Shown here one piece after another: positions 4,368 to 53,321 of a stretch of 64,000 bases of DNA. The notes under the pieces were generated by a model that was not told the origin of the DNA, did not search any database, and saw only the letters and a list, made by a program, of their open reading frames with translations. The DNA is taken from the IMG/VR virus record IMGVR_UViG_3300008117_000011, positions 1 through 64,000 of that record; one strand, written 5' to 3'. Numbering within the stretch: position 1 is the stretch's first letter; each line of letters starts with the position of its first letter. Made by a program: the position numbers and the translations under genes.

Positions 4368-4937
4368 TTAATTGTAGTTTTTAAATCTCTTAAACATATC
4401 TAAAGATTTATTTACACTTTCCATTAGATTATTATCCTCATCAAATTCGTCTAATGGTTGTGAACTAAAATCATCAAGCTCATCAATATCATACTCATAA
4501 TAGTCCTCCATCATTTCTTCAGTATCAATATCAAAAACAATATCCAAATTGTCGTCATCACAATTTTTACACTCACCATCATCTTTCATTCCAAGAGACA
4601 TATAATCAATTTCATCCTCGTTTGGTGAAGGATATAAATCATGCATAAAATCTGGATTATCCAAATCAACAGTTCCATTTTCTAAATCATCCGAACCATC
4701 AGCAATTTGATCTCTTCTATCAATATCTTCGTTAATTTTTGTATTTGTATAATGTTTTACCTCACCTTTATTTGATACTGTAATTCCGTTCTTATCATTT
4801 GCCAGATCTTGCACATAAAGAGGTTGCATGTTGGACCCATTTGCGTATTCTGTTACATAACCATCATAAAGTGATTTATGTTTGTCTAGAATATCATTTT
4901 TCTCAGTTTGAGACATCTTAAAGAAATATTGTGCCAT
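4368..4937 (-). CDS. Acidic hypothetical protein with EK..IL-type leader
   Basis: MAQYFFKMSQTEKNDILDKH; C-terminal LMES motif. Confidence 0.75.
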   Translation of the reverse strand: MAQYFFKMSQTEKNDILDKHKSLYDGYVTEYANGSNMQPLYVQDLANDKNGITVSNKGEVKHYTNTKINEDIDRRDQIADGSDDLENGTVDLDNPDFMHDLYPSPNEDEIDYMSLGMKDDGECKNCDDDNLDIVFDIDTEEMMEDYYEYDIDELDDFSSQPLDEFDEDNNLMESVNKSLDMFKRFKNYN

Positions 4938-4941
4938 ATTA

Positions 4942-5328
4942 TTATTTTTTACATTCTTTTATTATTTGTTTTTTTGTTTTAAAAAACAAAACGCTTTCAT
5001 TTATATCTTCAACATCATCAATTTCAACTACCTTTCTCCACTGATCAATAGGTTCTAATTCTGTACTTCCACAATTTTTACACTCTGGAAATTCAGAACC
5101 TTGTTCGTTTCCACATTGTTTACATATTCTACCGTCAATAAGTGCTAAACTAGAACCACTTTTCCAATTTACATAGTACTGATTTAATCCGAAGACGTTT
5201 GAAACTGACTTTACGACACCCGGTGTTCCTCCGGCAACACCAGAGAATTTATCAGACATATTAATACAAATTACTTTGTCACCAGGTTCTAATAGTACGT
5301 TTTTTTCATATTTAACTTTCTTTGCCAT
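4942..5328 (-). CDS. DUF4314-like SH3-fold protein with inserted double CxxC zinc ribbon
   Basis: GDKVICINM..D..GTPGVV...VNWKSGSSLALI motif; CKQC...CKNC. Confidence 0.6.
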   Translation of the reverse strand: MAKKVKYEKNVLLEPGDKVICINMSDKFSGVAGGTPGVVKSVSNVFGLNQYYVNWKSGSSLALIDGRICKQCGNEQGSEFPECKNCGSTELEPIDQWRKVVEIDDVEDINESVLFFKTKKQIIKECKK

Positions 5329-5349
5329 ACAAATATAAATATAGCGTAA

Positions 5350-5356
5350 TATTTAT
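5350..5356 (+). promoter_or_regulatory. TATTTAT putative phage (late) promoter, example
   Basis: TATTTAT-N5-ATG at 5362; the motif recurs before dozens of genes. Confidence 0.6.
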
Positions 5357-5361
5357 TTGTT

Positions 5362-5979
5362 ATGAAGATAATACTTACAGAATCACAATATAAAAATTTA
5401 ATACTTGAAAACTTAGGTAGGGAAACAATTAATAAATTAAAATCTCTTCAGGAATTCTTTGATAACGTATCTTCTGAAAGTAAAAAACAAATAGGATTAG
5501 ACTTAGGATTTCTTGCGACCTGGGGTGTTACAATTGCTGGTTTTGTCAGACCGATTAGTGAATTTATGAAAGGTGAATTTCCGGAACTAACATCAACGGA
5601 AATAATTCTTTTGTCAACTGGTGTAATTTTAACTTACTTTACAACAAACAAGGATAAACTAAGAAAAGTTCTTGATTTAATAAAAGAAAAGAATCTTATT
5701 TTTGAGTTTGACATAGTTCTTGAAAAGGCGGATAAGTTAAAAAACGTATTTTTTGCTTTTATTGATAGTCTTGCAATCCCTATAAGTAAGATATCAAATA
5801 TGCTTGCTTATACATTCATTATTCCGATAATTCCTGAACTATATGAAATGGCTCAAGGAAATGAATCAATGGATGTATCTGAAATGGTTGGTAGAGTTCT
5901 TGGTTTTGTTGGTATCACATATGGTGGAAATTTAACAAAAAGACTTCTTAATGAAATTGTAAGAAGATTTAAATCTTAA
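5362..5979 (+). CDS. Leader-tagged membrane-associated hypothetical protein
   Basis: MKIILTESQYKNLILE leader; hydrophobic segments. Confidence 0.8.
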   Translation: MKIILTESQYKNLILENLGRETINKLKSLQEFFDNVSSESKKQIGLDLGFLATWGVTIAGFVRPISEFMKGEFPELTSTEIILLSTGVILTYFTTNKDKLRKVLDLIKEKNLIFEFDIVLEKADKLKNVFFAFIDSLAIPISKISNMLAYTFIIPIIPELYEMAQGNESMDVSEMVGRVLGFVGITYGGNLTKRLLNEIVRRFKS

Positions 5980-7105: not shown

Positions 7106-7894
7106 TTAACCAAGAGTTTCAGTACATAACATTGTTATTTGTTCTGGCGTTAAAGATTCACCCATTTTCAATTGATTAAGAGCGTCTTGCGTTTTACAAC
7201 CCCAATAACCATCATCTTTAATACCAAGTGTTGGTAATTTTTTAGCTAAACATCTTTGTACTTCTTTTATTTTTTCACATTTATCACACTTGTGGTAATG
7301 TTGTGATTGTGAACAATCTTTGTATGCTGGACAAGCAGGAATTCCACTAGGGCATTTTTTAGTTGGGCTTACTTGTGATCCTTTACATTTATAACCATCC
7401 TCACCTAGTTTAGCCCAAGCTTTACTTCCAGGTCTATCGGTATCAGGCTTTAATTTTGTTCCACAACAAAACATTGATTTCATTTTTCCTATAAAATCAA
7501 CCGGGTCTGTATATATATACTCATATCTGTCAACCCAATTACCGCTATCGTCCTTCAATTTTCCAATTACTTTATTAGAATCACATTTTATTGTTAATAA
7601 CTCCCGATAAGCATAACCTCGTTGTAAATTATTCCAAAATGTTATCGCATTAAATCTTTCATCTCCCCAAACGACCGTTCCAAGTTTTAATTCAGCTGTT
7701 ACACCTTTACCACCTCCTTGTCCAATTTCTTGACCTCTAAAAGTAACATCGCCTTGAGTTATGTATTGACCTTTTTCGTTAAGAATATCCTTTTCTTTAC
7801 TATATTGCTCAAGAATTGGCTTTAAAGATAAGTTTTTGTGCATATCTAATATTCTTCTTTTTTCTTCTTCTGAAATTAAAATTCTTTTGTTCAT
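7106..7894 (-). CDS. Leader-tagged Cys-rich protein with C-terminal peptidoglycan-binding-like motif
   Basis: MNKRILISEEEKRRIL leader; IKEVQRCL...DGYWGCKTQDAL resembles PG_binding_1. Confidence 0.65.
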   Translation of the reverse strand: MNKRILISEEEKRRILDMHKNLSLKPILEQYSKEKDILNEKGQYITQGDVTFRGQEIGQGGGKGVTAELKLGTVVWGDERFNAITFWNNLQRGYAYRELLTIKCDSNKVIGKLKDDSGNWVDRYEYIYTDPVDFIGKMKSMFCCGTKLKPDTDRPGSKAWAKLGEDGYKCKGSQVSPTKKCPSGIPACPAYKDCSQSQHYHKCDKCEKIKEVQRCLAKKLPTLGIKDDGYWGCKTQDALNQLKMGESLTPEQITMLCTETLG

Positions 7895-7938: not shown

Positions 7939-8859
7939 TTAAGTTTGATTTTTACTAGAGCAAAAATCACCATTTTGTACATAATAAGACCCAATGTCTG
8001 CAAGATTAAAAACATATGAAGGTATTTTCATTAATTCTTGGTATTTAGGATTGTTAATTACCCATTCTGGAACATTTATACAACCGGATGATAAATTTGA
8101 TGATTTATTTATACTTTCATCATCTAAATCAAAAATTGTTCTATCTTTTGCCTTAATTAATGCGTCTTTTCTTTCTGGATCATTTAATACTTTATGAATT
8201 GCTTGTGACAATAACTTACCATCTAATGTTTTTAAATATGTGTAGGGAACACTTAAATTACTTGTTGTATATATACCAGGATTTAAAGAGGCTCCACCAC
8301 TAAATTCAAAAACCTCTTTATCGGAAACATCACTAACTTTTTTATTTTTATATTTTGCAATATAAGCCCTTCTTTCTTCAAAATTTAAAAGATTAAATTT
8401 TTTAAATTCGTCTGATGTTGCTTGTTTTTCTCTACCGGTAATAATTGGAATTGGGGATTTTTTTTGTAAATCTTCATATGGCGTCACATCGTTTAATTCT
8501 TTATCAAAAAAATAAATTGTATGTCGCATAGAGTTTATAATTATTATATTTTTATCTCTAAATCTTGGTCTTATTGCAATGAGTCCCATTTCGCAAGCCG
8601 TATAAGTTTCAACCCCATCTGAAATTAATTTTGTTGCAAATAACTGAATATCATTATTTATTCCTGAAAAAACAACATTTAAATCATCAGTATTTAACTT
8701 TGTTTTGTACTTTGCAATAATTTCATCGTAATCAACAACATTAGTTTTTGATGATTCGTCAAATTTAAGACAAGAGTTTTCGGTCTGTTCAGTTACAATA
8801 CCATATAAATTTTTTATGTGGTTTTTTTCACTTTCTGTTATGACAAATCTTTTACTCAT
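7939..8859 (-). CDS. Leader-tagged L,D-transpeptidase (YkuD)-like protein
   Basis: AIH...LSSGCINV His/Cys catalytic motif; MSKRFVITESEK leader. Confidence 0.55.
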   Translation of the reverse strand: MSKRFVITESEKNHIKNLYGIVTEQTENSCLKFDESSKTNVVDYDEIIAKYKTKLNTDDLNVVFSGINNDIQLFATKLISDGVETYTACEMGLIAIRPRFRDKNIIIINSMRHTIYFFDKELNDVTPYEDLQKKSPIPIITGREKQATSDEFKKFNLLNFEERRAYIAKYKNKKVSDVSDKEVFEFSGGASLNPGIYTTSNLSVPYTYLKTLDGKLLSQAIHKVLNDPERKDALIKAKDRTIFDLDDESINKSSNLSSGCINVPEWVINNPKYQELMKIPSYVFNLADIGSYYVQNGDFCSSKNQT

Positions 8860-10101: not shown

Positions 10102-10713
10102 TTACCAACTTCTTGATGACTTTAAGCCAAGTTTTTTTCTATATCTTGAGACATTACAACTCCAGTATCCGGCAGTTGTTCTATCTTTCTTTTGGTCACA
10201 TTTATGTCTTGCTCTAAAAGACTTTGCTCTTGCTTTACTTGCGTTTCTTACTCTCAAATTAGGATCTCCAAAAGTAACTTTTTTTACATTACCACCCGGG
10301 GTTTTAACATATACCGCAAATTTCTTTGGTCCTCCTGGGGTTCTAAATGGACTATTTAATTTAACATTTTTTCCACGATGTTTTACTTCAGTTAAAGTTT
10401 CCTCAATTTCAAATGGAGCGTCAAGATAAACAACTCTCCCATCATCAAGAGTTATAGATTTACCCAAATCACTTTCAATAATCCATTTATCATCTTTATT
10501 TAATTCAATCAGACCAAATTCATAAAGATTTCTAACTTCATTAATTAAATCAAAAAAAGATTCGGAATAAACTCTAAAAACGTTTTCCGAAAGTGTAATT
10601 TTATTGTCTAAATGATATTTTAAATTATCTGATATTTCAACCGATTCTTTTAATACCATTTTAGAATCCAATTCCTCAGAAAGTATTTTCTTTATATTAT
10701 TTTCTAAATTCAT
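10102..10713 (-). CDS. Leader-tagged DUF6321-like basic phage protein
   Basis: KKFAVYVK...VTFGDP...SFRARHKCD...AGYWSC motif; MNLENNIKKILSEE leader. Confidence 0.65.
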   Translation of the reverse strand: MNLENNIKKILSEELDSKMVLKESVEISDNLKYHLDNKITLSENVFRVYSESFFDLINEVRNLYEFGLIELNKDDKWIIESDLGKSITLDDGRVVYLDAPFEIEETLTEVKHRGKNVKLNSPFRTPGGPKKFAVYVKTPGGNVKKVTFGDPNLRVRNASKARAKSFRARHKCDQKKDRTTAGYWSCNVSRYRKKLGLKSSRSW

Positions 10714-10790: not shown

Positions 10791-11327
10791 ATGAAAAGAA
10801 TTAGATTATCAGAAAATGATCTTGTCAAGGTGATAAAGAAGGTTCTTAGCGAAAACGAGCAGCCAGAATCAAATAAAGGTAAAAAAGAACCACCAAAACC
10901 TAGATGTATTCCGGAAAACATAATCCCACTTGATGAAATTGTTGGTCAAGCCGATGAATATGTTAAATATTCCCCTGGAATCACAAAAAGAAGAATGGGT
11001 GTTAACTCAATGGTTGATACGTTAGGAATCTTAAACAACATTAGATTATTTAAAGATGTAAAAGATGGTGGATCTCATCTTGCTTATGATATAATGCATA
11101 ACTTAAATCGTTTTAGAAATAAAAACTACTACGATGAAACAAGTGGTGAATGTCATAAAGCTATGGATAAAATCATTGAACTTTACAAAGAAAACGAACA
11201 CGGAACAGAACTTGTTAAAGATATTGAAAGGATTTTGAATCTACAGACTAAGGATGACGAATACACTCCATCCCCAAGAGCTAAAGAGTATTTAAAACAA
11301 TGCGTTAACCTAGTTAAAGGACAATAA
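10791..11327 (+). CDS. Leader-tagged hypothetical protein
   Basis: MKRIRLSENDLVKVIKKVLSE leader. Confidence 0.8.
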   Translation: MKRIRLSENDLVKVIKKVLSENEQPESNKGKKEPPKPRCIPENIIPLDEIVGQADEYVKYSPGITKRRMGVNSMVDTLGILNNIRLFKDVKDGGSHLAYDIMHNLNRFRNKNYYDETSGECHKAMDKIIELYKENEHGTELVKDIERILNLQTKDDEYTPSPRAKEYLKQCVNLVKGQ

Positions 11328-13003: not shown

Positions 13004-13723
13004 TTATCCTAATGTTTGCATACAAGGAGACCCATCTTTACGGGTAGCACCTAACTTTAATTTTTCAATAGCGCTAGCGTACTTTGTAGAGTCAAGTTTA
13101 ATCCATTTTATACCTTTATCTTTAGATGCGTACCAATTATTATTTTTAAAGGCGTAAGTCCATTCTTTATCACCACTTAGCGTACAATGTTGGTTAGCTG
13201 GTATGACAATTTGGTTATCAACCACTGGTCTTTTCTTTAATTTTGTTCCGTCGCAAAATAAAGTCAAAATTGTTTTAACAAATCCTTCTGGTGACCCAAG
13301 AGCTACTAGTTTTTTATTGTTATGATACATTATTGTTCCTTTACCACCACTTTGCATTCCTGTAACATCACCACAAGTCATTGAAAATTTTCCGTCTAAC
13401 TTTTGTGTTAAAGTTTCATTTCCGCGAGTATAATCAATATGACCATCAAACATTATATGTTTGTCATCTGCAGCTGGTGATAAAATAGTACCGGTTGGGA
13501 TTTTAATTTTAATACCTTTCATATCACCAGTTAATGTTACTGGTTTGCCTTCAATTGTTGCTTTTTGTGTGAAATCATCAGCATCAGTACCAGCCAAGCT
13601 TAATGTTTGTGTATTTTTTAAAGTGTAAGTTCCGTCGGAATTTAACTTATAAGTCTGTTCTTCTATAACTCTTCTTACAATTCTTGTAAGATCTGTTTCT
13701 GTAAGTGTAATTATTCTTTTCAT
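13004..13723 (-). CDS. Leader-tagged hypothetical protein, paralogue of 16888-17550
   Basis: MKRIITLTETDLTRIVRRVIEEQ; shared C-terminal WIKLD..KYASAIEKL.LGATR.DGSPC. Confidence 0.8.
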   Translation of the reverse strand: MKRIITLTETDLTRIVRRVIEEQTYKLNSDGTYTLKNTQTLSLAGTDADDFTQKATIEGKPVTLTGDMKGIKIKIPTGTILSPAADDKHIMFDGHIDYTRGNETLTQKLDGKFSMTCGDVTGMQSGGKGTIMYHNNKKLVALGSPEGFVKTILTLFCDGTKLKKRPVVDNQIVIPANQHCTLSGDKEWTYAFKNNNWYASKDKGIKWIKLDSTKYASAIEKLKLGATRKDGSPCMQTLG

Positions 13724-13761: not shown

Positions 13762-14319
13762 TTACATATTTTTAGTTAAGTTCTTTGTTTCTTCATATAT
13801 TATTTGAGGATATGTTTCTTTAACCCAAGTTGTAAGGTCCTGGAATGTTTTAAAATTCATTGGTGTATCAATATAACTTTTAAAATCTATATTATAGTTT
13901 TTAACATCTTCTGTTTTATTATTATGTACGTATTTATCGCTAATTTCAATTGGTAACATTTCATCTCCTTCAAGAAAAGGTGTTGCATAACCATAATACG
14001 AAATCATTTCTTTGTCAGTAAAAACGTTTATCTCAATAGTTACGTAATAATTTCTATCACTACCAAAAACAATTTCAACGTTATCAAACATAAAATTAAC
14101 TTCAGTTAATTTATAACGAATTAAAAGAATAATAATATCACTAATTTTATCTACATCTAAATCAAAAACCTCTAAATCAACATCTTTTAGAATTTTATTA
14201 ATTCCAGTTAAGTTTAGATTAAATTTTTTCATAGTCTTAATAACCCCAATTTGATTAACTGAACTTATTATCATTTTTTGTGTTCTATTTATTTGTGATT
14301 CAGATAATATAACTTTCAT
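13762..14319 (-). CDS. Leader-tagged 'GYATP' family protein
   Basis: MKVILSESQ; YGYATPF shared with 33613 and 36537. Confidence 0.75.
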   Translation of the reverse strand: MKVILSESQINRTQKMIISSVNQIGVIKTMKKFNLNLTGINKILKDVDLEVFDLDVDKISDIIILLIRYKLTEVNFMFDNVEIVFGSDRNYYVTIEINVFTDKEMISYYGYATPFLEGDEMLPIEISDKYVHNNKTEDVKNYNIDFKSYIDTPMNFKTFQDLTTWVKETYPQIIYEETKNLTKNM

Positions 14320-14325: not shown

Positions 14326-14868
14326 TTAATTGTCTTCCGGTCTAGCCTGTGGTCTAAATTTATCAATTCTATTTTTAAAAGTTGTATGTGTTTTTAATAA
14401 CTCTTGATAATAACTAAGAAAATCGTCAAATAAATCATTAACTAACTTGGTTACTTTATTTATAACTTGTTTTTTATTTAAGTCTTCATCCCCAAATCGT
14501 AAAAGCGGTCTTGTTCTGTTTGTAAAAGATTTTAATTTATCAATTAAAATTTCACCTTTTTCTATTGTTAGTTTTTCAGAAAAGTCATTTAAGACAATCT
14601 CCATAATTTTAACTATTTCACCAATAAGATCGTTTGCTGCGGTTATATTTTCTTTTAAATCAACACTAGAAATGTCACCATCATTTAACATAATACGCAT
14701 TCCTTGTAAAACTTTAAGTAAGTCCTTTCCAGTTTCGTGAAGTAGTATCATTGAATGTCCTCCATGCATAATCATTGTATCAATGTCGTCATACCCAGAT
14801 ACCGCTTCGGCAATTAATTTTGCTAGTCTTTCTAGCTGACTTTCAGAAATTATAATTTTTTTTCCCAT
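14326..14868 (-). CDS. Leader-tagged helical hypothetical protein
   Basis: MGKKIIISESQLERLAKLIAE. Confidence 0.75.
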   Translation of the reverse strand: MGKKIIISESQLERLAKLIAEAVSGYDDIDTMIMHGGHSMILLHETGKDLLKVLQGMRIMLNDGDISSVDLKENITAANDLIGEIVKIMEIVLNDFSEKLTIEKGEILIDKLKSFTNRTRPLLRFGDEDLNKKQVINKVTKLVNDLFDDFLSYYQELLKTHTTFKNRIDKFRPQARPEDN

Positions 14869-14871
14869 AAT

Positions 14872-15507: not shown

Positions 15508-15729
15508 TTAATCAATATCTATAATACCGATAATTTCTTGATCTTCCGGTAGGTTATCTTTAAATGATTCAAAATCAACTTCAGAGTCAAAAGTCATCAT
15601 TTTTGATTCATAAACTGGTTCTAAATTATCTTCGTGTGTGATTTTAAAGGCAATACCTTTTTTTATTTTATCCGAGTTCTCAGATAAAATATATTTAAGT
15701 TGACCTTCAGTGATAATATAATTTTTCAT
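15508..15729 (-). CDS. Leader-tagged small protein
   Basis: MKNYIITEGQLKYILSE. Confidence 0.75.
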   Translation of the reverse strand: MKNYIITEGQLKYILSENSDKIKKGIAFKITHEDNLEPVYESKMMTFDSEVDFESFKDNLPEDQEIIGIIDID

Positions 15730-15734: not shown

Positions 15735-16025
15735 TTAAAAATCGTCTCCAGGTAGATTTTTATTTTTTGCCTTATCTAGATATTCATATGCTTTATCACC
15801 ATAGATTTCATATAGTCTGGCAAATATTTTTGCTGGACTTTTTCTCATATACCTTAAAACATCAATTGGAATGTAGGCACCATATTTTTGACCAAACACT
15901 TGTTTTACATCCTTTTCCCTTGATTGTGTTGGTATTTGTGGTTCAACAGAGTATTCGTTCTCCTTAACAATTTTTTCTATTAGGTTTATCAATTCAGATT
16001 CCGTTAGTCGTATTTGTTTTTTCAT
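15735..16025 (-). CDS. Leader-tagged small protein
   Basis: MKKQIRLTESELINLIEKIVKE. Confidence 0.8.
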   Translation of the reverse strand: MKKQIRLTESELINLIEKIVKENEYSVEPQIPTQSREKDVKQVFGQKYGAYIPIDVLRYMRKSPAKIFARLYEIYGDKAYEYLDKAKNKNLPGDDF

Positions 16026-16854: not shown

Positions 16855-16888
16855 AAAAAACCCCTCCGGTTAGAGGGGATTGTTTTTT
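16855..16888 (-). terminator. Repeated intrinsic terminator CCCCTCCGGTTAGAGGGG (copy 1)
   Basis: Hairpin + T-run on minus strand; identical at 19681 and 21326, variants at 23675 and 25591. Confidence 0.8.
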
Positions 16889-17550
16889 TAACCTAAAGTT
16901 GGTGTACAAGGTGATCCATCACTACGTGTCGCACCTAATTCTAATTTTTCAATAGCACTAGCGTACTTAATTGGGTCTAATTTAATCCAATTTATTAAAT
17001 CTCTTTTGGTTGCGTACCAATCACTTCCAACTCTACCGTAAAACCATTTACTATCACCACCTAACATACAATATTTATCTTTTGGTATTTTTACTTTATC
17101 ATCAGTAATTGTTTTGTCTGTCAAATCTTCCCAAGGTTTTATTGTTGTACCATTACAGAAAGTTTTTTTCAAAAATGACATTAAACCATTTGATCCTGGA
17201 GTTATATTTTCGTGATATTGCTTATCTTCAATATAAAATTCATCTTTATCACAATACATAATAGCTTCATTATATATTTTACGCTCACCTTTTTTTACTT
17301 CACTAAAGAATACACCATTTTCTGGGTTGTTATTTTTAAAGTCTCTGTAAACTTTACTTCCCTTTGGTAGTGTATACTGTTTAGGTTCGTAAAATTCGCC
17401 AGCTCTTCTATCAACAACGTGGTCTCTAGTTAAAGTGTAAGTACCTTTTGTTTTATCAAATTGTTCACTAACAACTTTATTTTGGGGATAATATTTTGAT
17501 AATATTTCCTGTTTTTCTTTTTCTTCAATTAAAATTCTTTTGTAGCTCAT
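16888..17550 (-). CDS. Leader-tagged hypothetical protein, paralogue of 13004-13723
   Basis: MSYKRILIEEKEKQEIL...VSEQ; shared C-terminus. Confidence 0.8.
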   Translation of the reverse strand: MSYKRILIEEKEKQEILSKYYPQNKVVSEQFDKTKGTYTLTRDHVVDRRAGEFYEPKQYTLPKGSKVYRDFKNNNPENGVFFSEVKKGERKIYNEAIMYCDKDEFYIEDKQYHENITPGSNGLMSFLKKTFCNGTTIKPWEDLTDKTITDDKVKIPKDKYCMLGGDSKWFYGRVGSDWYATKRDLINWIKLDPIKYASAIEKLELGATRSDGSPCTPTLG

Positions 17551-17572: not shown

Positions 17573-18151
17573 TTATAAAAAATTCTTTTCAAGGTAATTC
17601 TTTAAATTAGCTTTCGCTTTAAATAGATTTGATTTAGACGTTCCGGTTGATATTCCAAGTTTTTTAGCAATTTCATCGTGTGTTAAATCATCAAAATAAT
17701 ATAACTCTAAAACTTTTTTATACATTGGTGATAGTGTGTCTATTGCATCTCTAATATCTTTTTCTGAATATTGACCCATAAATAAATCGTCATATTCTTC
17801 ATCCTTTGGATTGTATTTTGAAAAATCAAAATCTTTGACCTGTTTTTTATTTTTTTCTTTTCTTAATTCATCCAAAATATGATTTCTTATTACCATTGAT
17901 ACCCAACCGGCAACATTTTCACCTCTAAATTGATCAAATTTTTGATAAGCTTTAATAAACCCTGTTTGACAAAAATCTTGTGCTTTTTCATAATCACCAT
18001 CAGAATATTTTAAACAAACTGATTTTAACATTTTATCATAAAGTTCATTGTATATTTTATTAAAATTATGTTCTATTAAAATATTTTGTACTTTAGATTC
18101 TTTAATGTCAACAATTCTACTATATTGTGATTCGGTAATAATTATTTTCAT
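17573..18151 (-). CDS. ECF-type sigma-70 family RNA polymerase sigma factor with N-terminal leader
   Basis: Region 2 (AQDFCQTGFIKAY...GWVSMVIRNHILDELRK) and region 4 (LTHDEIAKKLGISTGTSKSNLFKAK). Confidence 0.9.
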   Translation of the reverse strand: MKIIITESQYSRIVDIKESKVQNILIEHNFNKIYNELYDKMLKSVCLKYSDGDYEKAQDFCQTGFIKAYQKFDQFRGENVAGWVSMVIRNHILDELRKEKNKKQVKDFDFSKYNPKDEEYDDLFMGQYSEKDIRDAIDTLSPMYKKVLELYYFDDLTHDEIAKKLGISTGTSKSNLFKAKANLKNYLEKNFL

Positions 18152-19301: not shown

Positions 19302-19652
19302 TTACTCAACATCCAATAAAAATTCTGATAAGTCATCATCGTAATTTTCGGTACACTCCTCTTCTTTAATTAATCTATAAAAGTTATCTCTAATATAATC
19401 TAAAAAATTATGACGAACCCATTTATGTATTAGACTTGTTGTGTTATTTATTTCATCAGCCGAATCCTCAACTTCAATTCCAAAATCCTCTCTATTGTCA
19501 GAGACAAGCCAGCATACTTCGGTTACAAATTCCGCTAATGTAAAATCGCAAATATGAGATTTAAGTTCCTCAAATGTTTCGTCAATTACGTTTTGAATTT
19601 GTGTAAACCTACGGATTAATTCCTTTTGTGATTCGGAGATAATAATTTTCAT
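19302..19652 (-). CDS. Leader-tagged 'IRR' helical family protein
   Basis: Start re-called at MKIIISESQKELIRRF; TATTTAT-N4-ATG. Confidence 0.8.
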   Translation of the reverse strand: MKIIISESQKELIRRFTQIQNVIDETFEELKSHICDFTLAEFVTEVCWLVSDNREDFGIEVEDSADEINNTTSLIHKWVRHNFLDYIRDNFYRLIKEEECTENYDDDLSEFLLDVE

Positions 19653-19674: not shown

Positions 19675-19706
19675 AAAAAACCCCTCCGGTTAGAGGGGAT
19701 TGTTTT
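19675..19706 (-). terminator. Repeated intrinsic terminator (copy 2)
   Basis: Identical to the 16855 copy. Confidence 0.8.
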
Positions 19707-20068
19707 TAAGATCCTGGTAGTAGACTCATCATTATTACATCACCAACCCTAAAGCCATTTTTACTTTTTAAATCACATTGTGGATTCATAGTTTTTAAAG
19801 CTTCCTTTTGATCTATCTTCTCATAGACGTGACTTAACGTATCGCCTTGTTTTATTCTATATAATTCAATGTTGTGGTTTCCAGTATTTTTAATTTCTTT
19901 TATTAAATCAGAGTCTGAAAAACAATATTTACCACCTTGACCTGGTTTTGTAATTGATTTTTTATTCATAGCCATACTTTTAGCTTTTGAATCTGTTGGC
20001 TGTTCACTTATAACTCTTTTAACAATACGAACAAGGTCCGATTCTGTAAGTCTTATTACTTTTTTCAT
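19706..20068 (-). CDS. Leader-tagged LysM-domain protein
   Basis: YRIKQGDTLSHVY...MNP...FRVGDVI; MKKVIRLTESDLVRIVKRVISEQ leader. Confidence 0.7.
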   Translation of the reverse strand: MKKVIRLTESDLVRIVKRVISEQPTDSKAKSMAMNKKSITKPGQGGKYCFSDSDLIKEIKNTGNHNIELYRIKQGDTLSHVYEKIDQKEALKTMNPQCDLKSKNGFRVGDVIMMSLLPGS

Positions 20069-20912: not shown

Positions 20913-21239
20913 TTAACGTACTGAATCAAGTCTTACTGTAAAAATAATAACTTCCCACTCTGTACCATATGAACCAAGGTTTAGTTTGAAAGTTTTATTT
21001 AACTCTTGTACTACTTCTTTTCCGAAATCCCCAACATATTCCCATCTCTTAGCAATGTTTCCTTCACCGACTTTGTAAGGATCTATAACAACCTCAAGAA
21101 CGTTTTTATCAATAATTTCACCATCAAATTTTTTAATTGGGTATGTACTATACCTAACACCTTTGACATATGGGAATCTCATCTTTAAGTACTTTCCTAT
21201 TGATCCGGCAAGTTTGCTTTCGGTTATTATATATTTCAT
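20913..21239 (-). CDS. Leader-tagged hypothetical protein
   Basis: Start re-called at MKYIITESKL. Confidence 0.75.
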   Translation of the reverse strand: MKYIITESKLAGSIGKYLKMRFPYVKGVRYSTYPIKKFDGEIIDKNVLEVVIDPYKVGEGNIAKRWEYVGDFGKEVVQELNKTFKLNLGSYGTEWEVIIFTVRLDSVR

Positions 21240-21963: not shown

Positions 21964-22377
21964 TTAGAAAGATACGTTTTCGGCTTCCATCCCAAACTCT
22001 TTATTAAACCATTCAATAACGTAAAGCATTTTATCATCACCAAAAACAGTTTCAAGTCTTTCAAAAACCAATCTAAAAAGTTCTAAAGTTCTTTCACCTT
22101 CATAATATCTACAATAAGAGACTCCGGTTTTCTTATCTTTATATTCAATGGATCTTACGTGACGAAGTTCATTACCATAAGAATCTCTACCTTCAAAATA
22201 GTGTTTTATCTTTTCGGTATTTTTTTTAGTAAACCCCGGAAAATTCATTTTCATAAATCTTCCAATCATACGAACATTTTTTTCAAGCTCAGCGTAAAAA
22301 TCATCCTCTTCTTCAGATAAAACCTTTTTTACAATTCTATTTATATCCGATTCAGAAAGGTTTATAATATTTTTCAT
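21964..22377 (-). CDS. Leader-tagged hypothetical protein
   Basis: MKNIINLSESDINRIVKKVLSEE. Confidence 0.8.
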   Translation of the reverse strand: MKNIINLSESDINRIVKKVLSEEEDDFYAELEKNVRMIGRFMKMNFPGFTKKNTEKIKHYFEGRDSYGNELRHVRSIEYKDKKTGVSYCRYYEGERTLELFRLVFERLETVFGDDKMLYVIEWFNKEFGMEAENVSF

Positions 22378-34155: not shown

Positions 34156-34657
34156 CTGATGGTTCAAAACTTATAATATAATCATCTTCGTCTAATTTAA
34201 GTTGTCTTGCCAAATCATATGTAAAATCCTCAAATAGATATTTTAACTCCCATTTCATTGCTTTAAGATTAAAACCATCTTCACCATCTTTCAGATCTGC
34301 CAAATCATATGTTTTTTCCTCCCCATTCCTTAATGTAACTGTTACTGTTCCTTCTAATATCTTATAATAAAAGGTCATAGTCCCATACATATCAAGTTCT
34401 ACGTGTCTTATCTGGAATTTAAAATCGTATCCTTCTGTGTAGTCAGATTTAAAGTCATTTGATGAAAATATTTGATTCTGGAGATGTCGTCCAAGAAGTA
34501 TTGTTGGTCTTTCATTTAAAATCTTTCCCAGATTATTAATTCCATTTACTTTTTTTGCAACCGGAATGATACCATCCTTCTTAATCATCTTAAGTAGCCT
34601 GGACTGGATGGATGTTTCTTCTTTTAATATTCTTCTTATGTTTTCTTGTAGGTTCAT
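34142..34657 (-). CDS. MNLQE-leader protein (GYDF...EGTV family)
   Basis: Paralogous to the C-terminal half of 39709. Confidence 0.8.
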   Translation of the reverse strand: MNLQENIRRILKEETSIQSRLLKMIKKDGIIPVAKKVNGINNLGKILNERPTILLGRHLQNQIFSSNDFKSDYTEGYDFKFQIRHVELDMYGTMTFYYKILEGTVTVTLRNGEEKTYDLADLKDGEDGFNLKAMKWELKYLFEDFTYDLARQLKLDEDDYIISFEPSVTLP

Positions 34658-34983
34658 TTTTTTTTCATATTTCTATAATACATAATAAGAACTGGATCAT
34701 AAACTGATATCATATGTTTTACAAATGTATCTATATCTTCTTTTGGTAATTCTTTCTCAATCTCAATATTGTATTTGTTAAAAATATAGTTCTCTAGCGT
34801 TGCCTCAACTAATTTGTATTTGAACTCTTCTAGTGAGTTTGAATCGTAATACATATATGGAATTCCCTTTCTCATCATTTTCTCAAATTTATGATGATCA
34901 ACCCTTCTAGTGAAAAAATAAGGTAGTTTATTGTTTTCGGTTTCTTCTTTTAATATTTTTCTTATGGTTTCCTGTAAATTCAT
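34654..34983 (-). CDS. MNLQE-leader RR family protein
   Basis: MNLQETIRKILKEE...LPYFFTRRV. Confidence 0.8.
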   Translation of the reverse strand: MNLQETIRKILKEETENNKLPYFFTRRVDHHKFEKMMRKGIPYMYYDSNSLEEFKYKLVEATLENYIFNKYNIEIEKELPKEDIDTFVKHMISVYDPVLIMYYRNMKKK

Positions 34984-35176: not shown

Positions 35177-35515
35177 TTATCTATAAATGTGTGTATACTC
35201 TTTTTTGATTTTATCATCAAAGTATTCCGAAAGGGCTGAAAAGGTCTCCTCATGCCATTCTTCATTTTCATCAAATGATGTATATAACTGCCAGTGAAGT
35301 CCATCAATTGTCATTGATATTACAACAAATTTATATCTATCTAAATCTGGTTTTGTTCCAGTTCTTGAGTATTCTCTTTGGAACATTTCTTTTGCTGAGT
35401 CTAATGACGATTCAAATTCTTCTTCAATATCCTCTTGTGAAACCCTACGTCTTATAAATGCCGGAAGTTTTGTTTCCTCTTTTAATATTCTTTTTATGGA
35501 TTCTTTTAAATTCAT
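35177..35515 (-). CDS. MNLQE-leader RRR family protein
   Basis: Start re-called; close paralogue of the first module of 29731 (IDGLHWQLY / IDGIHYELY). Confidence 0.8.
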   Translation of the reverse strand: MNLKESIKRILKEETKLPAFIRRRVSQEDIEEEFESSLDSAKEMFQREYSRTGTKPDLDRYKFVVISMTIDGLHWQLYTSFDENEEWHEETFSALSEYFDDKIKKEYTHIYR

Positions 35516-35665: not shown

Positions 35666-36040
35666 TTACATATCAAAGTATTTATACATACTACAATCAG
35701 CATTATTGTAATATTCTTTTATTTCTTTATCAAACATTCTTTTAATATTATAAAGTAACTCACCATAAACTGCATATTCCTCGTCCTCATCTTTTCTATA
35801 GTACTCCGGAAATATCTCAAGTGTTCTTTCAGCAACTGCTCTTACAACAACACTCCAGTAAAGTTGTAAACCATACTCAGGATCCTTATCTTTATACTTA
35901 TCTTTCCAGTAACAAGGTTCCTGGTCCTCAAGTTCTTGTTTTAATATTTTATCTACACTATCAAATCTTCTAATTATGAACATTTCATAATCATTTCTTT
36001 CTTCTCTTAGAACTTTTCTTATGGATTCTCTTAAATTCAC
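35666..36040 (-). CDS. MNLQE-leader RR family protein
   Basis: MNLRESIRKVLREE...FIIRRF. Confidence 0.8.
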   Translation of the reverse strand: MNLRESIRKVLREERNDYEMFIIRRFDSVDKILKQELEDQEPCYWKDKYKDKDPEYGLQLYWSVVVRAVAERTLEIFPEYYRKDEDEEYAVYGELLYNIKRMFDKEIKEYYNNADCSMYKYFDM

Positions 36041-36536: not shown

Positions 36537-37115
36537 ATGAAATATATAATCACAGAAAGTCAATTAAGTAGAACCAAAAACTTTGTTTTTAATAAGATAG
36601 ATGAGTGGGGTCTTTGGAAAACAATTGACAGACTTAATTTAAATATTGATACTCTTGATAGAATTTTTGATGGTGGTATGCCAGATTGGTTTAATTGTGG
36701 TGTACTTAATGATTTAATCAAGTTTTACTATAGTAAAGGAGAAATAAAACTAAATAAAACTAAAGAAATAGATGGTGTTTTATATGGTTTAAAATGTGAT
36801 TGGGATGACTTTGGTAATGCAAACTATTTTAAATTAACTAACTTTGAAACTAAAGAGGGTATTAGCGGTTATGCCACACCATACTGGGAAGGTAATTGTT
36901 ATTTACCAATTGATGCCGAATATTATACATACGATGCTGAAGAAGATTTTAACGAATTTAATTTTCACGAATACGAAACTTTTAATTTAAAAAGTAAATT
37001 TTCTTCTTTTAGGGAATTCAAAGAATACGCCGATAATGAAATCCCTGATATAATAATAAATTACATAGTAAGAATATTACCTAAGACAAGAGAAGAGTCC
37101 GGGAGTTGGGATTAA
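36537..37115 (+). CDS. Leader-tagged 'GYATP' family protein
   Basis: MKYIITESQL; SGYATPYWEG. Confidence 0.8.
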   Translation: MKYIITESQLSRTKNFVFNKIDEWGLWKTIDRLNLNIDTLDRIFDGGMPDWFNCGVLNDLIKFYYSKGEIKLNKTKEIDGVLYGLKCDWDDFGNANYFKLTNFETKEGISGYATPYWEGNCYLPIDAEYYTYDAEEDFNEFNFHEYETFNLKSKFSSFREFKEYADNEIPDIIINYIVRILPKTREESGSWD

Positions 37116-39121: not shown

Positions 39122-39712
39122 TTACATAAGATTTTTAATTCTTTGGATTTCTTCTTTTACGATTTCGTGACCTCCACCATCTAACTTATCTGTAAAACCC
39201 ATAAGTTTGTCAAATGCCGGATGAGACTGAATTGGTTCTTTCTTTTTATCTTTCATTTGATTCCAGGTAGATGGTTTTACCTTCATATGGTTTTTAACAA
39301 GATATTTGATTTCATCAACATCTGTTCCTTCAAACGAACTAATCCACTCTTTGAATTGGTCAACATAGTCTGCTGACTTATCTTCGTGTCCATATGCTGT
39401 TGGTTGTCCGGTCTTTGGATTAATTGCATAAACATCCATCTTTCCAAGGTCGTGAAACAATGCTGCCATAATCATATTGGGGTCATCTGGGTAATGATGA
39501 TAAGCTCTTTTTAAAACAATAATGATATGTTTTAATGTGTTTCCTTCCGGATGCCATTCAGGGTTTTGTTTTGCACTCCATTGTTTAAATAATAATTCTT
39601 TTAATTCTGGTGTTAGATTTTTAATTAACTCTTGTGGTGTTGCGTGAAGTTTCTCTTCAGATATAATATTCATCATATTTTTAATTGTTTCTATATTTTC
39701 TCTTAAATTCAT
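39122..39712 (-). CDS. HD-domain phosphohydrolase with leader motifs at both termini
   Basis: QNPEWHPEGNTLKH...AALFHDLGK...GHE...NHM. Confidence 0.8.
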   Translation of the reverse strand: MNLRENIETIKNMMNIISEEKLHATPQELIKNLTPELKELLFKQWSAKQNPEWHPEGNTLKHIIIVLKRAYHHYPDDPNMIMAALFHDLGKMDVYAINPKTGQPTAYGHEDKSADYVDQFKEWISSFEGTDVDEIKYLVKNHMKVKPSTWNQMKDKKKEPIQSHPAFDKLMGFTDKLDGGGHEIVKEEIQRIKNLM

Positions 39713-44140: not shown

Positions 44141-44464
44141 ATGATTGATTATAAAACGGAAAAACTACTTTTAAAATTTTTAAATCATAGTAGTGGTGGA
44201 AATATTGTGAGTATTCTTGGTTACACCCAAAAGCTTGAGTCTAGTGTATTAAACCTAGATGTATTTGAATTCCAAACAGCAAAAACATTTGTACCAAAAG
44301 TTGATAAAGTATTACAAATTAGATGTAATTGTAGGGATAATTTACATTTTAATGGAATGAATAATCTTTCACAAAGAACCTATCTAACTTTTAAAGATGT
44401 CTTAAAGGATTTTAGTAAAATAGAAATAGAATATAACTACTCTATGTATTGTTGTCGTGATTAA
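44141..44464 (+). CDS. Hypothetical protein
   Basis: TATATTTG-GGT-ATG; no leader. Confidence 0.6.
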   Translation: MIDYKTEKLLLKFLNHSSGGNIVSILGYTQKLESSVLNLDVFEFQTAKTFVPKVDKVLQIRCNCRDNLHFNGMNNLSQRTYLTFKDVLKDFSKIEIEYNYSMYCCRD

Positions 44465-44658
44465 GCTTTAAGATACTCCTTCCAGAACTTTAATAGTTCT
44501 TTATCGTTATATCTTTGTTCATCACTATCCCAACCACACATATGACAAAGGTTTGGGTGTTTGTCATCCTTTTCTTTTTTCCAGGAATGACCACACTTAC
44601 AACTTATTTTTTCTTCAAATAGTAATCTACTTTGTCTTTCTGTTATTATTATTTTCAT
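44461..44658 (-). CDS. Leader-tagged zinc-ribbon protein
   Basis: MKIIITERQ; CKCGH...CHMCG. Confidence 0.75.
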   Translation of the reverse strand: MKIIITERQSRLLFEEKISCKCGHSWKKEKDDKHPNLCHMCGWDSDEQRYNDKELLKFWKEYLKA

Positions 44659-45048
44659 TTACCAATTTCTATTTGTATTTGTATTCCATTCCTCGTGTGA
44701 GTTAATTATTAAATCCATTTTGTACTTTTGAAATACTCTGTAATTTATAACGTGTCTTAAACTTTCATAGTCTCTACTTTCAAAAATACTATAATAGTAT
44801 ATGTCAACCCAGACTCTAAACCTTGGGTAATTTTTACCTTGAAGGTTTGGTGTTGTTTCAACCTTTTCAATTTCAACTACTTTAATTTTTTCTAGACTCT
44901 CAACAAGGTCGCAATCATACCAGCTAAACCAATCACCATCCCCACCATCATTAAGTTTTTCACATTCGTTTTTCAATTCCTTTATGGTTTCCTGAATTGC
45001 ACGATTGATAAAATTATCTTGCTGTGATTCTGTTATTATAAATTTCAT
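44659..45048 (-). CDS. Leader-tagged protein, paralogue of 36037
   Basis: MKFIITESQ. Confidence 0.75.
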   Translation of the reverse strand: MKFIITESQQDNFINRAIQETIKELKNECEKLNDGGDGDWFSWYDCDLVESLEKIKVVEIEKVETTPNLQGKNYPRFRVWVDIYYYSIFESRDYESLRHVINYRVFQKYKMDLIINSHEEWNTNTNRNW

Positions 45049-50031: not shown

Positions 50032-50045
50032 ATTAAATAAATATC

Positions 50046-50458: not shown

Positions 50459-51079
50459 ATGAAAGATTTGATTCGTCAGGTTTTAAGGGAAACTATACAA
50501 AGTAAGTACAGAAGATTAAGTCCAGAACTTAATACTGTAATTATGAAAAAAATTACTTCTTTATTTAAAAATTTCAAAGTTGACTATAAAGACCCAAAAA
50601 AAACTTATGGAAATATTGATGTAGAATTTTGTTTAAATGGTAAAAAGGTTGTCAATTTTATTGGTGGTGATGAACCAGGGTGGGATGATTATGATACACC
50701 AGAAGGAACAAAAATTGACCCATATGGTCGTGTTACGTTTGATAAAAAGATTGTAAATCAATTAACTTCAACATTTAATATCAGAAAATCATTGGCCTTA
50801 CATCTTTTAACAGAATTTTTTGAGGATAATTATCTAAATACAATATCACAAAAATATGGAATTCAATTTAACGATTTAGATGATGGTCAAGAGTACGATT
50901 ATAAAAATGGTTTATGTCAATCTGAAATGGTAAAAAGTGTTCCAAATTATAATAGAGAACAAATGCTTGACTATATAGAATCAAGTGGAAGAGGAAGGAG
51001 ATATTGGGAAGAAATGGATGATGAGGAATTACAGAATTCTTTTGAGCAAATCTGGGTTATAATAAATTTTCGTGAGTAA
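50459..51079 (+). CDS. Leader-tagged hypothetical protein
   Basis: MKDLIRQVLRE; TATTTAT-N5-ATG. Confidence 0.8.
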   Translation: MKDLIRQVLRETIQSKYRRLSPELNTVIMKKITSLFKNFKVDYKDPKKTYGNIDVEFCLNGKKVVNFIGGDEPGWDDYDTPEGTKIDPYGRVTFDKKIVNQLTSTFNIRKSLALHLLTEFFEDNYLNTISQKYGIQFNDLDDGQEYDYKNGLCQSEMVKSVPNYNREQMLDYIESSGRGRRYWEEMDDEELQNSFEQIWVIINFRE

Positions 51080-52062
51080 TGAAAAAATTAATTAGACATA
51101 TATTACAAGAGGAAACCTCAATGTTTTTACCAGATAGATTTATTTACAATTCTATGATGGAAAGTAATGACGATATCATTAAGGCTTACCCTAAAAAGAA
51201 AAAACTAGCAATAAAATTTTTAGAGTCTTTTAAACTTGAGCACTGGGAAAATAAAAGATATCAAATGGAATACCTTGCGACACCAAAAGGTACTATTATT
51301 TTTATGTTAACGGATGCTGAGTTGTCTATTCAATCTGAAATTTATGATGTTTTAACACGGATTATGGATAATCCGGAATCTCTAACCTATTTCATAAATG
51401 ATTATGTTAGAAATAGAGGACTTTCTTTAGATTATATCTATGTAACTAGATCCGGTGGTATTGGTGAAATTGAGGATGATGATGACCGGGTAATTCAAAA
51501 CATTCAAGAATCAACTAGTAAAAACCCACTCAAACAATATTTTTTTAAAATCTGGGACAAAGAAAAAAAAGAAGGTAAAATTCCAATGATTGGTAATTTA
51601 GAAAGACTTGGTCTTATTGAAAAGCAAAATGAGATTATTCAATACTTTGCTGAGTATATGGGTTGGGACACAAACAGTAAATTGGAAGCAATTAAAATGT
51701 ATCTTTTAAACCAAACATTCACAGAAGATTATATTACTGGTATGAAAGATATCCCAGAAGGAAAAATAACAATTAAATTTACAGATATTCAAGTTGGTGA
51801 AAAGCCTAGTACAGATACGTATTTTGATGAAAGTTACATTGCTGGCGAATTTGTTGTTTTAGATGGTTCATTTTTAGAACCTGAAGTTGGTGAAACATTA
51901 CACTTTTCAAGTGGTGATATACCAATGTCTGATTTTCTTGAATACCACGATTTTAAAGATGCTGTTAGTGAGATTGTAGAAGGTTTTGTTGATAATATTT
52001 TAAAAACATTTGGTTATAAAAAGGGTGCCGTTAGTTATCCTTACGTTGATTTTAACTGGTAA
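51079..52062 (+). CDS. Leader-tagged two-module protein
   Basis: MKKLIRHILQEE; second module after IQES paralogous to 52062. Confidence 0.8.
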   Translation: MKKLIRHILQEETSMFLPDRFIYNSMMESNDDIIKAYPKKKKLAIKFLESFKLEHWENKRYQMEYLATPKGTIIFMLTDAELSIQSEIYDVLTRIMDNPESLTYFINDYVRNRGLSLDYIYVTRSGGIGEIEDDDDRVIQNIQESTSKNPLKQYFFKIWDKEKKEGKIPMIGNLERLGLIEKQNEIIQYFAEYMGWDTNSKLEAIKMYLLNQTFTEDYITGMKDIPEGKITIKFTDIQVGEKPSTDTYFDESYIAGEFVVLDGSFLEPEVGETLHFSSGDIPMSDFLEYHDFKDAVSEIVEGFVDNILKTFGYKKGAVSYPYVDFNW

Positions 52063-52619
52063 TGAAAGAGTTAATTAGAAATATATTAAGAGAAGATAAC
52101 AAAACTGAAATGGTGTTAAACTATTTTAGGAAGTTGTGGCAAAAGGATGTTGACTCTGGTAATGTTCCTACAATACCACATATTGATATTAAAAGAAAAA
52201 AATTAGATTCGTTCTATGATGATATAAAAGTTGCATATTTTGATTTTGTTGGTGGAAAAGAAAAAGCTTTTGAGTACTTTGAAAAATCAATTGAAAATAA
52301 AGTATTAACTGATAGGGACTTATCTAAGGTGCTTGATTTTCGTGGTCCGGATACTTTTACTTTTGAACTTTATGGTGTAACATCTGTTGATTACAAAGAT
52401 GGTGAAGTTGATGAAATTGAGTTTGTTTTTGATGTGTTAGATGGTAACTTTGAAACTGATGGTGGCGTTTTTGTTACCTGGTCTGAATTAATGCCTGAAG
52501 AAATGGATGATTTATACCACGATGTGTCAAATTGGATTAGGGGATTAATTGAGGACTACGTTGACACAATGGCGGAAAGTTATGGTTTTAAATTTGCATC
52601 ATATGGTTCCTGGGGATAA
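52062..52619 (+). CDS. Leader-tagged hypothetical protein
   Basis: MKELIRNILRED; YF.K.W.K....G..P shared with 51079. Confidence 0.8.
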   Translation: MKELIRNILREDNKTEMVLNYFRKLWQKDVDSGNVPTIPHIDIKRKKLDSFYDDIKVAYFDFVGGKEKAFEYFEKSIENKVLTDRDLSKVLDFRGPDTFTFELYGVTSVDYKDGEVDEIEFVFDVLDGNFETDGGVFVTWSELMPEEMDDLYHDVSNWIRGLIEDYVDTMAESYGFKFASYGSWG

Positions 52620-52620
52620 A

Positions 52621-52652
52621 AACAGAAAAGTCGGATTTCTCCGACTTTCTTT
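52621..52652. terminator. Bidirectional terminator
   Basis: AAAGTCGGA-TTTC-TCCGACTTT between convergent genes. Confidence 0.75.
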
Positions 52653-52903
52653 TATTTAATCCCGTATACTGTGGCTTTTTCCCCCAAAAGGAATTTTGCC
52701 ATATCAACTGCCTGATCTTTTGTCTTATAACCTTTCTCAACCAATTTTTTTGAGTGGTAGATGTTATAAACAGTTGATGCTACGTCCGGTTTAGCATACT
52801 TAAACTTACTTTCTTTTTTAGGTTTAAAACTGTCTTTAGCATAGACATCGTAAAAACCAACTTTGCAAATGTACCTTCCTCTTACTCCAGATTTTGTTGC
52901 CAT
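52652..52903 (-). CDS. Small basic hypothetical protein
   Basis: 83 aa ORF. Confidence 0.7.
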   Translation of the reverse strand: MATKSGVRGRYICKVGFYDVYAKDSFKPKKESKFKYAKPDVASTVYNIYHSKKLVEKGYKTKDQAVDMAKFLLGEKATVYGIK

Positions 52904-52955
52904 CTTTTTTTTAGATATTTAATGATTAATAATAAACAAATGTAATTCTTTTTTT

Positions 52956-53321
52956 TTAATTTTTCAAAACATTATTAAGAAATTTTCTAATTGTTTTGAT
53001 TATTTTCTGTTTTTTTGGGTGTTGATCCGGTAATTCAAAAAAATCATCACCAATCAAATCTGTTTCTTCAACAAGTAATGATAAAATATTATTCATCATT
53101 TCTTTTTTAGTTCTATAACTATTAAAACCATAACCTGGAAAACCTTCAAATGTATATTCAATTACCTTTAAAGGTTCTTCTTCCGTTTCAAAGTTAGACC
53201 AATTAAGTTTTTTTTCTTCAACTTTAATTCTTCTCATTAAAAAAAGTAAAATGTCAGAATCAAACTCCTCGTGTTTTGAGGAAATTTGATTCTTTTCATT
53301 TTCATTAATTATGATTTTCAT
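52956..53321 (-). CDS. Leader-tagged protein, paralogue of the second module of 29731
   Basis: MKIIINENEK; ILLFLMRR...QKIIKTIRKFLN. Confidence 0.75.
   Translation of the reverse strand: MKIIINENEKNQISSKHEEFDSDILLFLMRRIKVEEKKLNWSNFETEEEPLKVIEYTFEGFPGYGFNSYRTKKEMMNNILSLLVEETDLIGDDFFELPDQHPKKQKIIKTIRKFLNNVLKN

Follow-up and report, generated by a model that had tools for sequence, protein, structure and literature searches.

Capsid-targeting sequences 10-20 residues long bring a diversity of internal proteins to the scaffolding core, and the T4 protein Alt is cleaved at ITE-6 and LTE-619 (PMC5694885). In the GenBank record of phage T4, the relevant N-termini read MELITE/L for Alt, MKTYQEFIAE/A for IPII and IPIII, ...ITE/A for IPI, MAKINELLRE/S for gp24, and MEGLIE/A for gp67, with the slash marking the junction after Glu. 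Here we analyze a stretch of viral DNA of 64,000 nucleotides (hereafter, the window), which comprises positions 1-64,000 of IMG/VR record IMGVR_UViG_3300008117_000011, that is, of contig Ga0114351_1000034 (223,671 bp) from a freshwater sample. About one third of its open reading frames (ORFs), 35-39 of approximately 117, begin with one of five classes of short N-terminal leader, named A to E. An earlier note on this DNA had taken the leaders for a greatly expanded system that loads dozens of effectors into the phage head and injects them. The T4 precedent on which it drew, N-terminal targeting sequences of the (I/L)-x-E type, is borne out by the T4 record and the literature (PMC5694885).

The window belongs to a lineage of uncultured freshwater T4-related giant phages with genomes of roughly 300 kb. 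As with T4 IPI, IPII, IPIII and Alt, the leaders are short N-terminal pre-sequences on unrelated small proteins and end in (I/L)-x-E, and homologues of gp20, gp21 and gp23 occur in T4 gene order. Class B (MKIIITE/S) is close to Alt MELITE/L and to the ..ITE/A end of IPI, and class A has LTE as at the gp23 and Alt sites. In contrast, T4 has a handful of tagged proteins with essentially one leader class, whereas we found at least 35 in 64 kb and about 190 body families with five classes, among which class A (22-24 residues) is almost invariant. The leaders also differ from T4's in having no sequence similarity to MKTYQEFIAE, and their cleavage and packaging are putative. Phages of the phiKZ-like giant group (phiKZ, SPN3US) likewise have dozens of head-loaded proteins cut after the Glu of a three-residue motif, including paralogues with identical N-termini (PMC5694885). 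However, their propeptides are mostly longer than 100 residues, their motif is (S/A/G)-x-E, and their protease is of the S80 type, whereas the leaders described here span 7-24 residues from the Met across classes, have I or L at P3, and are accompanied in the lineage by a direct gp21 (S77) homologue. The Far-T4 phages (Roux et al. 2015, PMC4360716) are similar by description, being uncultured, freshwater and T4-related with a capsid protein longer than that of T4, but N-terminal leaders are not mentioned in that paper.

All 35 start codons given in the earlier note exist and carry the stated motifs when searched with regular expressions for the five classes. Three of them (21239, 33572 and 35515) lie as internal ATGs within longer mechanical ORFs, although they are likely the true starts. 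Of the starts assigned to class C, 10713, 31951 and 39712 are weak members only and 36040 is a GTG start. The list was also incomplete, as it lacked 14868 (class B), 33613 and 53321 (both weak B), and a D-like helix at 4937. In an unbiased test of 104 ORFs, we counted the protein pairs identical at 8 or more of the 20 residues in positions 2-21. There were 76 such pairs, compared to 1-3 when the 20-residue windows were internal or C-terminal and 1.35 when the N-termini were shuffled. Therefore, the sharing of N-termini is not due to chance. Six-frame translations of the window and the first 1.33 Mb of related loci placed a Met 2-6 residues upstream of nearly every motif match (188/189 for class A, 146/147 for B, 20/20 for E, and 24/28 for C), with the motifs lying a median of 3-8 codons past the upstream in-frame stop.

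We derived class consensuses with anchored patterns from the full 2.43 Mb of related phage DNA. These were MKK(I/V)(I/V)RLTESDLTRIVKRVIKE for class A (162 unique proteins), MK(I/Y)I(I/L)TESQ for class B (65), MNLQExIRRxLxEET for class C (17), MKKFIITEEEKSRILGMH for class D (27), and MKxLIRxILxE for class E (11). The claim that most leaders contain or end in (I/L/V)-x-E holds for every one of the five consensuses. Leu7, Glu9 and Glu22 of class A are invariant, Ile20 is nearly so, and position 21 is variable. A variable residue before Glu22 is as expected of a putative P3-x-P1 site, and conservation, about 0.9 at Glu22, is only about 0.3 one residue later. With 29% basic and 14% acidic residues (net charge of about +3), the class A leader is amphipathic and has neither a hydrophobic core nor an unbroken hydrophobic run, while the stretch that follows it is less hydrophobic and enriched in acidic residues. 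An AlphaFold2 model of the class A protein starting at 23646 (predicted local distance difference test score, pLDDT, of 74) has residues 1-8 extended followed by a helix at residues 9-29 (pLDDT of about 70), and the model had no significant fold match in the PDB (best E=1.3).

Two further sets of shared N-termini were observed beside the five classes. The minus-strand genes at 36037-36498, 39122-39712 and 45045-45917 have a common N-terminal helix motif, E.L/I S/E R/T IK.LM..I/V.E, that may represent a sixth leader class. Those at 55412-55693 and 55754-55966, also on the minus strand, have their first 17 residues in common (MIKRLI.+LKTLRLYFV, 88% identical) and then diverge, which may be a hydrophobic-basic leader type.

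Queried with the class A protein 23646, a set of 5.8 billion proteins gave 168 matches, mostly limited to the first ~26 residues at 76-92% identity and attached to many different bodies. Among 185,579 bacterial and archaeal species genomes (one each), we found 7 leader matches; every one was in a metagenome-assembled genome, and the contig was shorter than 7 kb in five cases. This indicates that the tag is phage-specific. A tblastn search of 50,697 phage records with a class A protein had no match with an E value of 1 or less, implying that no cultured phage has the tag, and a full-text literature search with four leader strings found no paper. The lineage itself is very common in lakes. The IMG/VR matches listed include at least 597 confirmed loci in a scan with the major capsid protein (MCP) of L085, a short relative contig, and at least 485 confirmed loci, on contigs up to 304 kb, in a scan with the leader-A alignment.

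On L085, the gp23-like MCP gene has class A and class D genes next to it, leader genes are 10 kb or less from the MCP gene in at least 15 loci, and one 296-kb contig bears the MCP gene as well as leader-A arrays. The head module follows T4 gene order: large terminase (Terminase_6N), Portal_T4, two small proteins, Peptidase_S77, an acidic protein of about 500 amino acids (aa), and Gp23. The MCPs are 617-642 aa compared to 521 aa in T4, and those of the nearest cultured phages have only ~43% identity. The protease (PF03420) has 32-38% identity to T4 gp21, matches structure 5JBL (E=4e-14), and keeps the gp21 active-site blocks ELNHP, SSRG and D..V..PS, which hold the His, Ser and Asp. The acidic protein, encoded between the protease and MCP genes at the position of gp22 in T4, had no sequence match to gp22 or any PHROG family.

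In the sample from which the window derives, this head module is found on the 86,466-bp contig Ga0114351_1000187. We infer that this contig and that of the window belong to one genome because their lengths (223.7 and 86.5 kb) sum to ~310 kb, akin to the 296-322 kb of relatives. An identical MCP in IMG/VR was present on one contig among the matches listed, which lacked the window genes, making the link between window and head module indirect. Thus, the gp21-like prohead protease anticipated by the earlier note exists as an S77 homologue in the lineage and in the window's sample, although we did not find it on the contig of the window itself. A gene for ribosomal protein S21 lies in the same-sample head module (L170, 6529-6720), on the opposite strand between a portal-proximal 239-aa gene and a 153-aa gene.

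Head proteins of the lineage carry the same junction as the leaders. In a MAFFT alignment, the maturation site of T4 gp23 (..SFL-TE/AEIGG) aligned with ..SFLINE/ATSDG in the 12 most frequent MCP N-terminal variants, and the exact string FLINEA occurs in 45 of 83 MCP sequences. The proposed comparison of leaders with the MCP propeptide accordingly gave a common (I/L)-x-E junction at the T4-equivalent cut position. In a protein family of ~240 aa, found in head-module loci only, the pre-sequence varies in both sequence and length (9-37 residues, median ~13), yet in all 38 unique N-termini its last three residues are (I/L)-x-E, immediately followed by a conserved ATS..G..GSY start. Many pre-sequences of this family (..IIKKVLxE, ..IIRKVIKE) are similar to the helix of leader A as well as to leaders C and E. 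Judging by their position and sequence, the (I/L)-x-E junctions in the MCP and the ~240-aa family are probably maturation cuts.

Many leader genes are single-gene cassettes, in which a GC-rich terminator hairpin is followed by ATATTTAT 5-15 nt before the ATG and then by the gene. There are 18 terminator-like hairpins in the 13-26 kb region versus 4.0 ± 2.6 expected. Three of the cassette hairpins (Table 1) are identical copies of CCCCTCTAACCGGAGGGG plus a T-run, each located between two leader genes and having a terminator score on both strands. ATATTTAT is found upstream of 136 of 251 leader genes (54%) compared to 568 of 2211 other genes (26%; p=2e-19), and it lies ahead of the protease gene in 33 of 36 loci, the putative scaffold gene in 8 of 10, and the large terminase gene (TerL) in 8 of 12, as well as the endolysin-containing operon. 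By analogy with T4's TATAAATA, ATATTTAT may be a late promoter. Consensus sigma-70 promoters were not enriched (70 found versus 78 expected), and one freshwater metatranscriptome contained only scraps of the region, as contigs, and yielded no transcription start sites. ATATTTAT is largely missing from a block of thymidylate synthase and small genes at 64-72 kb of the contig, where there are other repeated upstream elements. Runs of small genes within this block (L086 866-4473, equivalent to contig 67.5-71.1 kb) each have TTTAAATCAGAATAAG or ACAACAACGAAANAATAGAAAGTT directly before the ATG, which may mark another temporal class.

The best and most economical reading is that the leaders are T4-type capsid-targeting pre-sequences cut by a gp21-like protease, and we regard this as somewhat probable. 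Under this reading, leader-tagged proteins would be synthesized late in infection along with the head proteins. The tag, an extended stretch and then a basic amphipathic helix, would dock each protein on the acidic scaffolding core of the assembling prohead. The gp21-family protease would then cut after the Glu of (I/L)-x-E, which would be LTE and IKE in class A, ITE in class B, I(S/T)E in class D, and LRE or LKE in classes C and E. Mature cargo would be retained in the head and enter the host along with the DNA, with the five classes acting as interchangeable versions of one tag. All computable predictions of the loading and injection idea agree with what we found (N-terminal position, modularity, gp21 protease, junctions, promoter motif and cargo type), but packaging, cleavage and injection stay conjectural.

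Several points count against this interpretation. Scaffold docking, leader cleavage, virion presence and injection are all inferred, and we hold our confidence at the level given because virion presence and cleavage of the tagged proteins have this status. The 24-residue class A leader is conserved beyond the needs of a cleavage site alone, and the putative cut is followed by Q, N or S in the leaders versus A in the two head proteins. The class C motif is also internal in three proteins, which look like two-unit fusions. Moreover, ATATTTAT precedes a quarter of other genes too, the head module is on a different contig from the window, and a leader-bearing ECF sigma factor could equally serve inside the cell late in infection. 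To our knowledge, at least 35 tagged genes in 64 kb far exceeds every known case.

The strongest alternative, which we nevertheless consider unlikely, is that the leaders dock to some other shared partner. This could be a phage or host protease or unfoldase (making the leader a timed-degradation tag), a chaperone, or an assembly hub of the infected cell, and (I/L)-x-E would be incidental to a charged amphipathic helix. A specific binding surface would suit the strong conservation of the whole class A leader, the sigma factor and an HD-domain enzyme both bear leaders, and (I/L)-x-E is not rare in the I/L/K/E-rich proteins of an AT-rich genome. However, docking to another partner leaves unexplained why conservation stops exactly at Glu, why the same junction recurs in the MCP and in the ~240-aa head-module family, why cell-wall enzymes dominate the recognizable cargo, and why the lineage is T4-like with a gp21 homologue.

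Most leader-protein bodies have no Pfam or PHROG match. Those recognizable by Pfam are mostly peptidoglycan enzymes and occur on classes A (PG_binding_1 with YkuD/Tlde1; Tae4; PG_binding_1), B (Phage_lysozyme with LysM; Peptidase_M23), and D (SLT; PG_binding_1). Tae4 and Tlde1 domains are also known as type VI secretion effectors. Short amphipathic helices or conserved N-terminal modules with a linker deliver varied cargo to a shell or injection machine in bacterial microcompartments (encapsulation peptides) and polymorphic toxins (trafficking domains). Unlike those systems, no shell or secretion-system genes were seen here and the context is a phage head module. Body charge does not discriminate leader proteins from others, as the median isoelectric points are 5.8 for leader bodies and 6.3 for other proteins.

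Peptidoglycan enzymes lacking an export signal fit delivery from the virion. They might instead suggest that the leaders are an unconventional signal to the periplasm or cell wall during infection or lysis that bypasses the virion, as with auxiliary lysis enzymes passing through holin lesions. In favor of such a signal, at least 7 leader proteins have peptidoglycan-binding or -cleaving domains, and the promoter-like motif shared by many leader genes also precedes the endolysin-containing operon. Even so, we find it improbable. The leaders are highly charged, and that of class A lacks the hydrophobic core of Sec, Tat or lipoprotein signals, whereas other genes of the window encode typical signal peptides (e.g., 3542 and 56298). 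The canonical endolysin (60435-61253) has no leader, most cargo has no cell-wall domain, and one cargo protein is a sigma factor. With the tag essentially absent from cellular genomes, there is also no known host export pathway that would recognize it. Classical hydrophobic signal peptides ending in ..S/GQ are present on an NS-type endonuclease and an S8 peptidase (L170 13467-16397, adjoining the head genes, and window 56298-56891), which implies that the phage employs ordinary export signals besides the leaders.

Leaders and bodies are combined modularly. The description of the bodies as unrelated requires qualification within the window, where paralogy extends over the full length of several class B, C and E proteins, but it holds for class A bodies, which match over the first 22-33 residues only. 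It also holds across relatives, as 287 unique leader proteins (1.33 Mb) fell into 188 body clusters, 139 of which were singletons. Some body clusters mix leader classes (A+B, B+E, and B+C+E), and within the window the proteins starting at 13723 (class A) and 17550 (class D) share a 113-residue C-terminal domain although their leaders differ. Only two homologues of the body of 13723 occur among the 5.8 billion proteins, yet the leader of this protein is widespread. Leaders are 76-100% identical among genomes whose MCPs are 73-79% identical to the L085 reference MCP, while bodies turn over completely.

These observations bear on whether the shared N-termini are merely remnants of duplication, inherited in fast-evolving paralogue families and having no common function. 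The tandem clusters of full-length class B, C and E paralogues in the window are what such an origin would produce, as is the conservation of the third codon position in class C (0.77), which resembles that of recent duplicates. Nonetheless, it is a quite improbable explanation given that nothing beyond the leader is common to class A bodies, that leaders are preserved while bodies are replaced, and that homologous bodies bear different leader classes.

Codon positions distinguish conservation of protein from conservation of DNA. In classes A and B, identity was 0.79-0.90 at the second codon position but no more than 0.50-0.55 at the third position, and different codons encoded 42-45% of identical residues. 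With the third position least conserved, these leaders are conserved as protein rather than DNA, which rules out a DNA-level repeat or mobile cassette end for both classes. All three positions are about equally conserved in class C (0.77-0.81), as for recent tandem duplicates, and this class is ambiguous with respect to a DNA-level repeat. A nucleic-acid element, whether for translation initiation, in the mRNA, or as a recombination handle for cassette swapping, is highly improbable: the terminator-ATATTTAT-gene cassettes would yield very short or leaderless mRNAs and class C DNA is nearly as conserved as its protein, but the codon pattern of classes A and B is opposed to it and the motif is read in one frame only, always from Met. 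Each of the four alternatives covers part of the data, and none explains the sharp Glu boundary, the head-protein junctions, and the codon pattern.

If the leaders are capsid-targeting pre-sequences, they would give a common address, the head and then the host, to about one third of the region's genes and to hundreds of orphan families. A set of hypothetical proteins would become a defined arsenal of injected effectors, and a simple sequence rule would be available for finding cargo in metagenomes. Like the T4 tag, which already serves to package foreign proteins in phage heads, the leaders would be available as new short tags for this purpose, and they would offer a handle on host takeover by giant phages in the first seconds of infection. 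More tentatively, the multi-class code may load many dozens of fast-evolving proteins per head for injection, including cell-wall-remodeling enzymes and the ECF sigma factor. Such a code would constitute a natural programmable protein-delivery system far larger than the internal-protein system of T4, and would include the first injected sigma factor. Although T4 offers a precedent for this mechanism, its scale, the division of the tag into several classes, and the type of cargo would be new.

Table 1. Leader genes and cassette hairpins in the window, grouped by leader class. Genes are referred to in the text by their start codons.
Feature	Position	Strand	Length (aa)	Remarks
Class A	10791..11327	+	178	MKRIRLSENDL...
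Class A	13004..13723	-	239	C-terminal 113 aa common with class D gene 17550
Class A	15735..16025	-	96	
Class A	19706..20068	-	120	MKKVIRLTESDLVRIVKRVISE
Class A	21964..22377	-	137	
Class A	23266..23646	-	126	Consensus leader
Class B	5362..5979	+	205	MKIILTESQ
Class B	13762..14319	-	185	Paralogue of 36537 and 14868
Class B	14326..14868	-	180	MGKKIIISESQ; not in earlier note
Class B	15508..15729	-	73	
Class B	17573..18151	-	192	ECF-type sigma-70 factor; region 2 residues 38-100, region 4 residues 132-183
Class B	19302..19652	-	116	
Class B	20913..21239	-		MKYIITESK; start within mechanical ORF beginning 21302
Class B	23777..24151	-	124	Paralogue of 24620
Class B	24255..24620	-	121	
Class B	24640..24834	-	64	
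Class B	36537..37115	+	192	
Class B	44461..44658	-	65	Cys-rich
Class B	44659..45048	-	129	
Weak class B-like	52956..53321	-	121	MKIIINENEK
Class C	29259..29729	-	156	MNIHESIRRILREE
Class C	29731..30414	-	227	Second, internal motif copy at residue 117
Class C	32374..32709	-	111	
Class C	32709..33572	-	287	Start 33572; internal C-like copy near residue 187
Class C	34142..34657	-	171	Body homologous to residues 143-306 of gene 39709-40647
Class C	34654..34983	-	109	
Class C	35177..35515	-	112	Start 35515
Class C	35666..36040	-	124	GTG start
Weak class C-like	10102..10713	-	203	MNLENNIKKILSEE
Weak class C-like	31568..31951	-	127	MNLQEELNEILE
Weak class C-like	39122..39712	-	196	MNLRENIETIKNMM; HD-domain protein
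Class D	7106..7894	-	262	MNKRILISEEEKRRIL
Class D	7939..8859	-	306	
Class D	16888..17550	-	220	C-terminal domain common with class A gene 13723
Class E	50459..51079	+	206	MKDLIRQVLRE
Class E	51079..52062	+	327	
Class E	52062..52619	+	185	
Terminator-like hairpin	23672..23693	-		Just upstream of ATATTTAT and leader gene 23646
Cassette hairpins	16861-16878, 19681-19698, 21326-21343			Identical copies (CCCCTCTAACCGGAGGGG)
Cassette hairpin	24864-24885			

The window as a whole is AT-rich (GC content of 0.27-0.31) and dense in short ORFs, with the minus strand predominating. Its phage-like genes include an endolysin with PG_binding_1 and GH19 domains adjoining a two-component system, an SLT domain protein, a metallophosphatase, and an NS-type endonuclease. 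The contig region at 64-72 kb, past the window, encodes thymidylate synthase, a homing endonuclease, and small ORFs without leaders. An 835-aa DHH-like protein (41587-44094, minus strand) has ~40% identity to proteins of two uncultured phages larger than 600 kb. Within it, a segment of ~35 residues (679-713) is 70-86% identical to hypothetical proteins of many T4-like cyanophages, while the remainder is unrelated to those proteins.

Six tandem paralogues of ~222-236 aa occupy 45910-50031 on the minus strand, with 20-33% mutual identity and starts of the form MK(N/K)K(L/F)K.L..YF+G. Two have a faint match to DUF6878. Kinship among the six extends over their full length rather than the N-terminus alone, making them a separate expanded family. 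Finally, the endolysin gene and a 225-aa gene have those of a GAF/PAS histidine kinase and a response regulator immediately upstream (61939-63944 and beyond, minus strand; also in L001 and L086). The arrangement is kept in relatives, where a holin follows, and a two-component sensor apparently wired to a phage lysis cassette is unusual.

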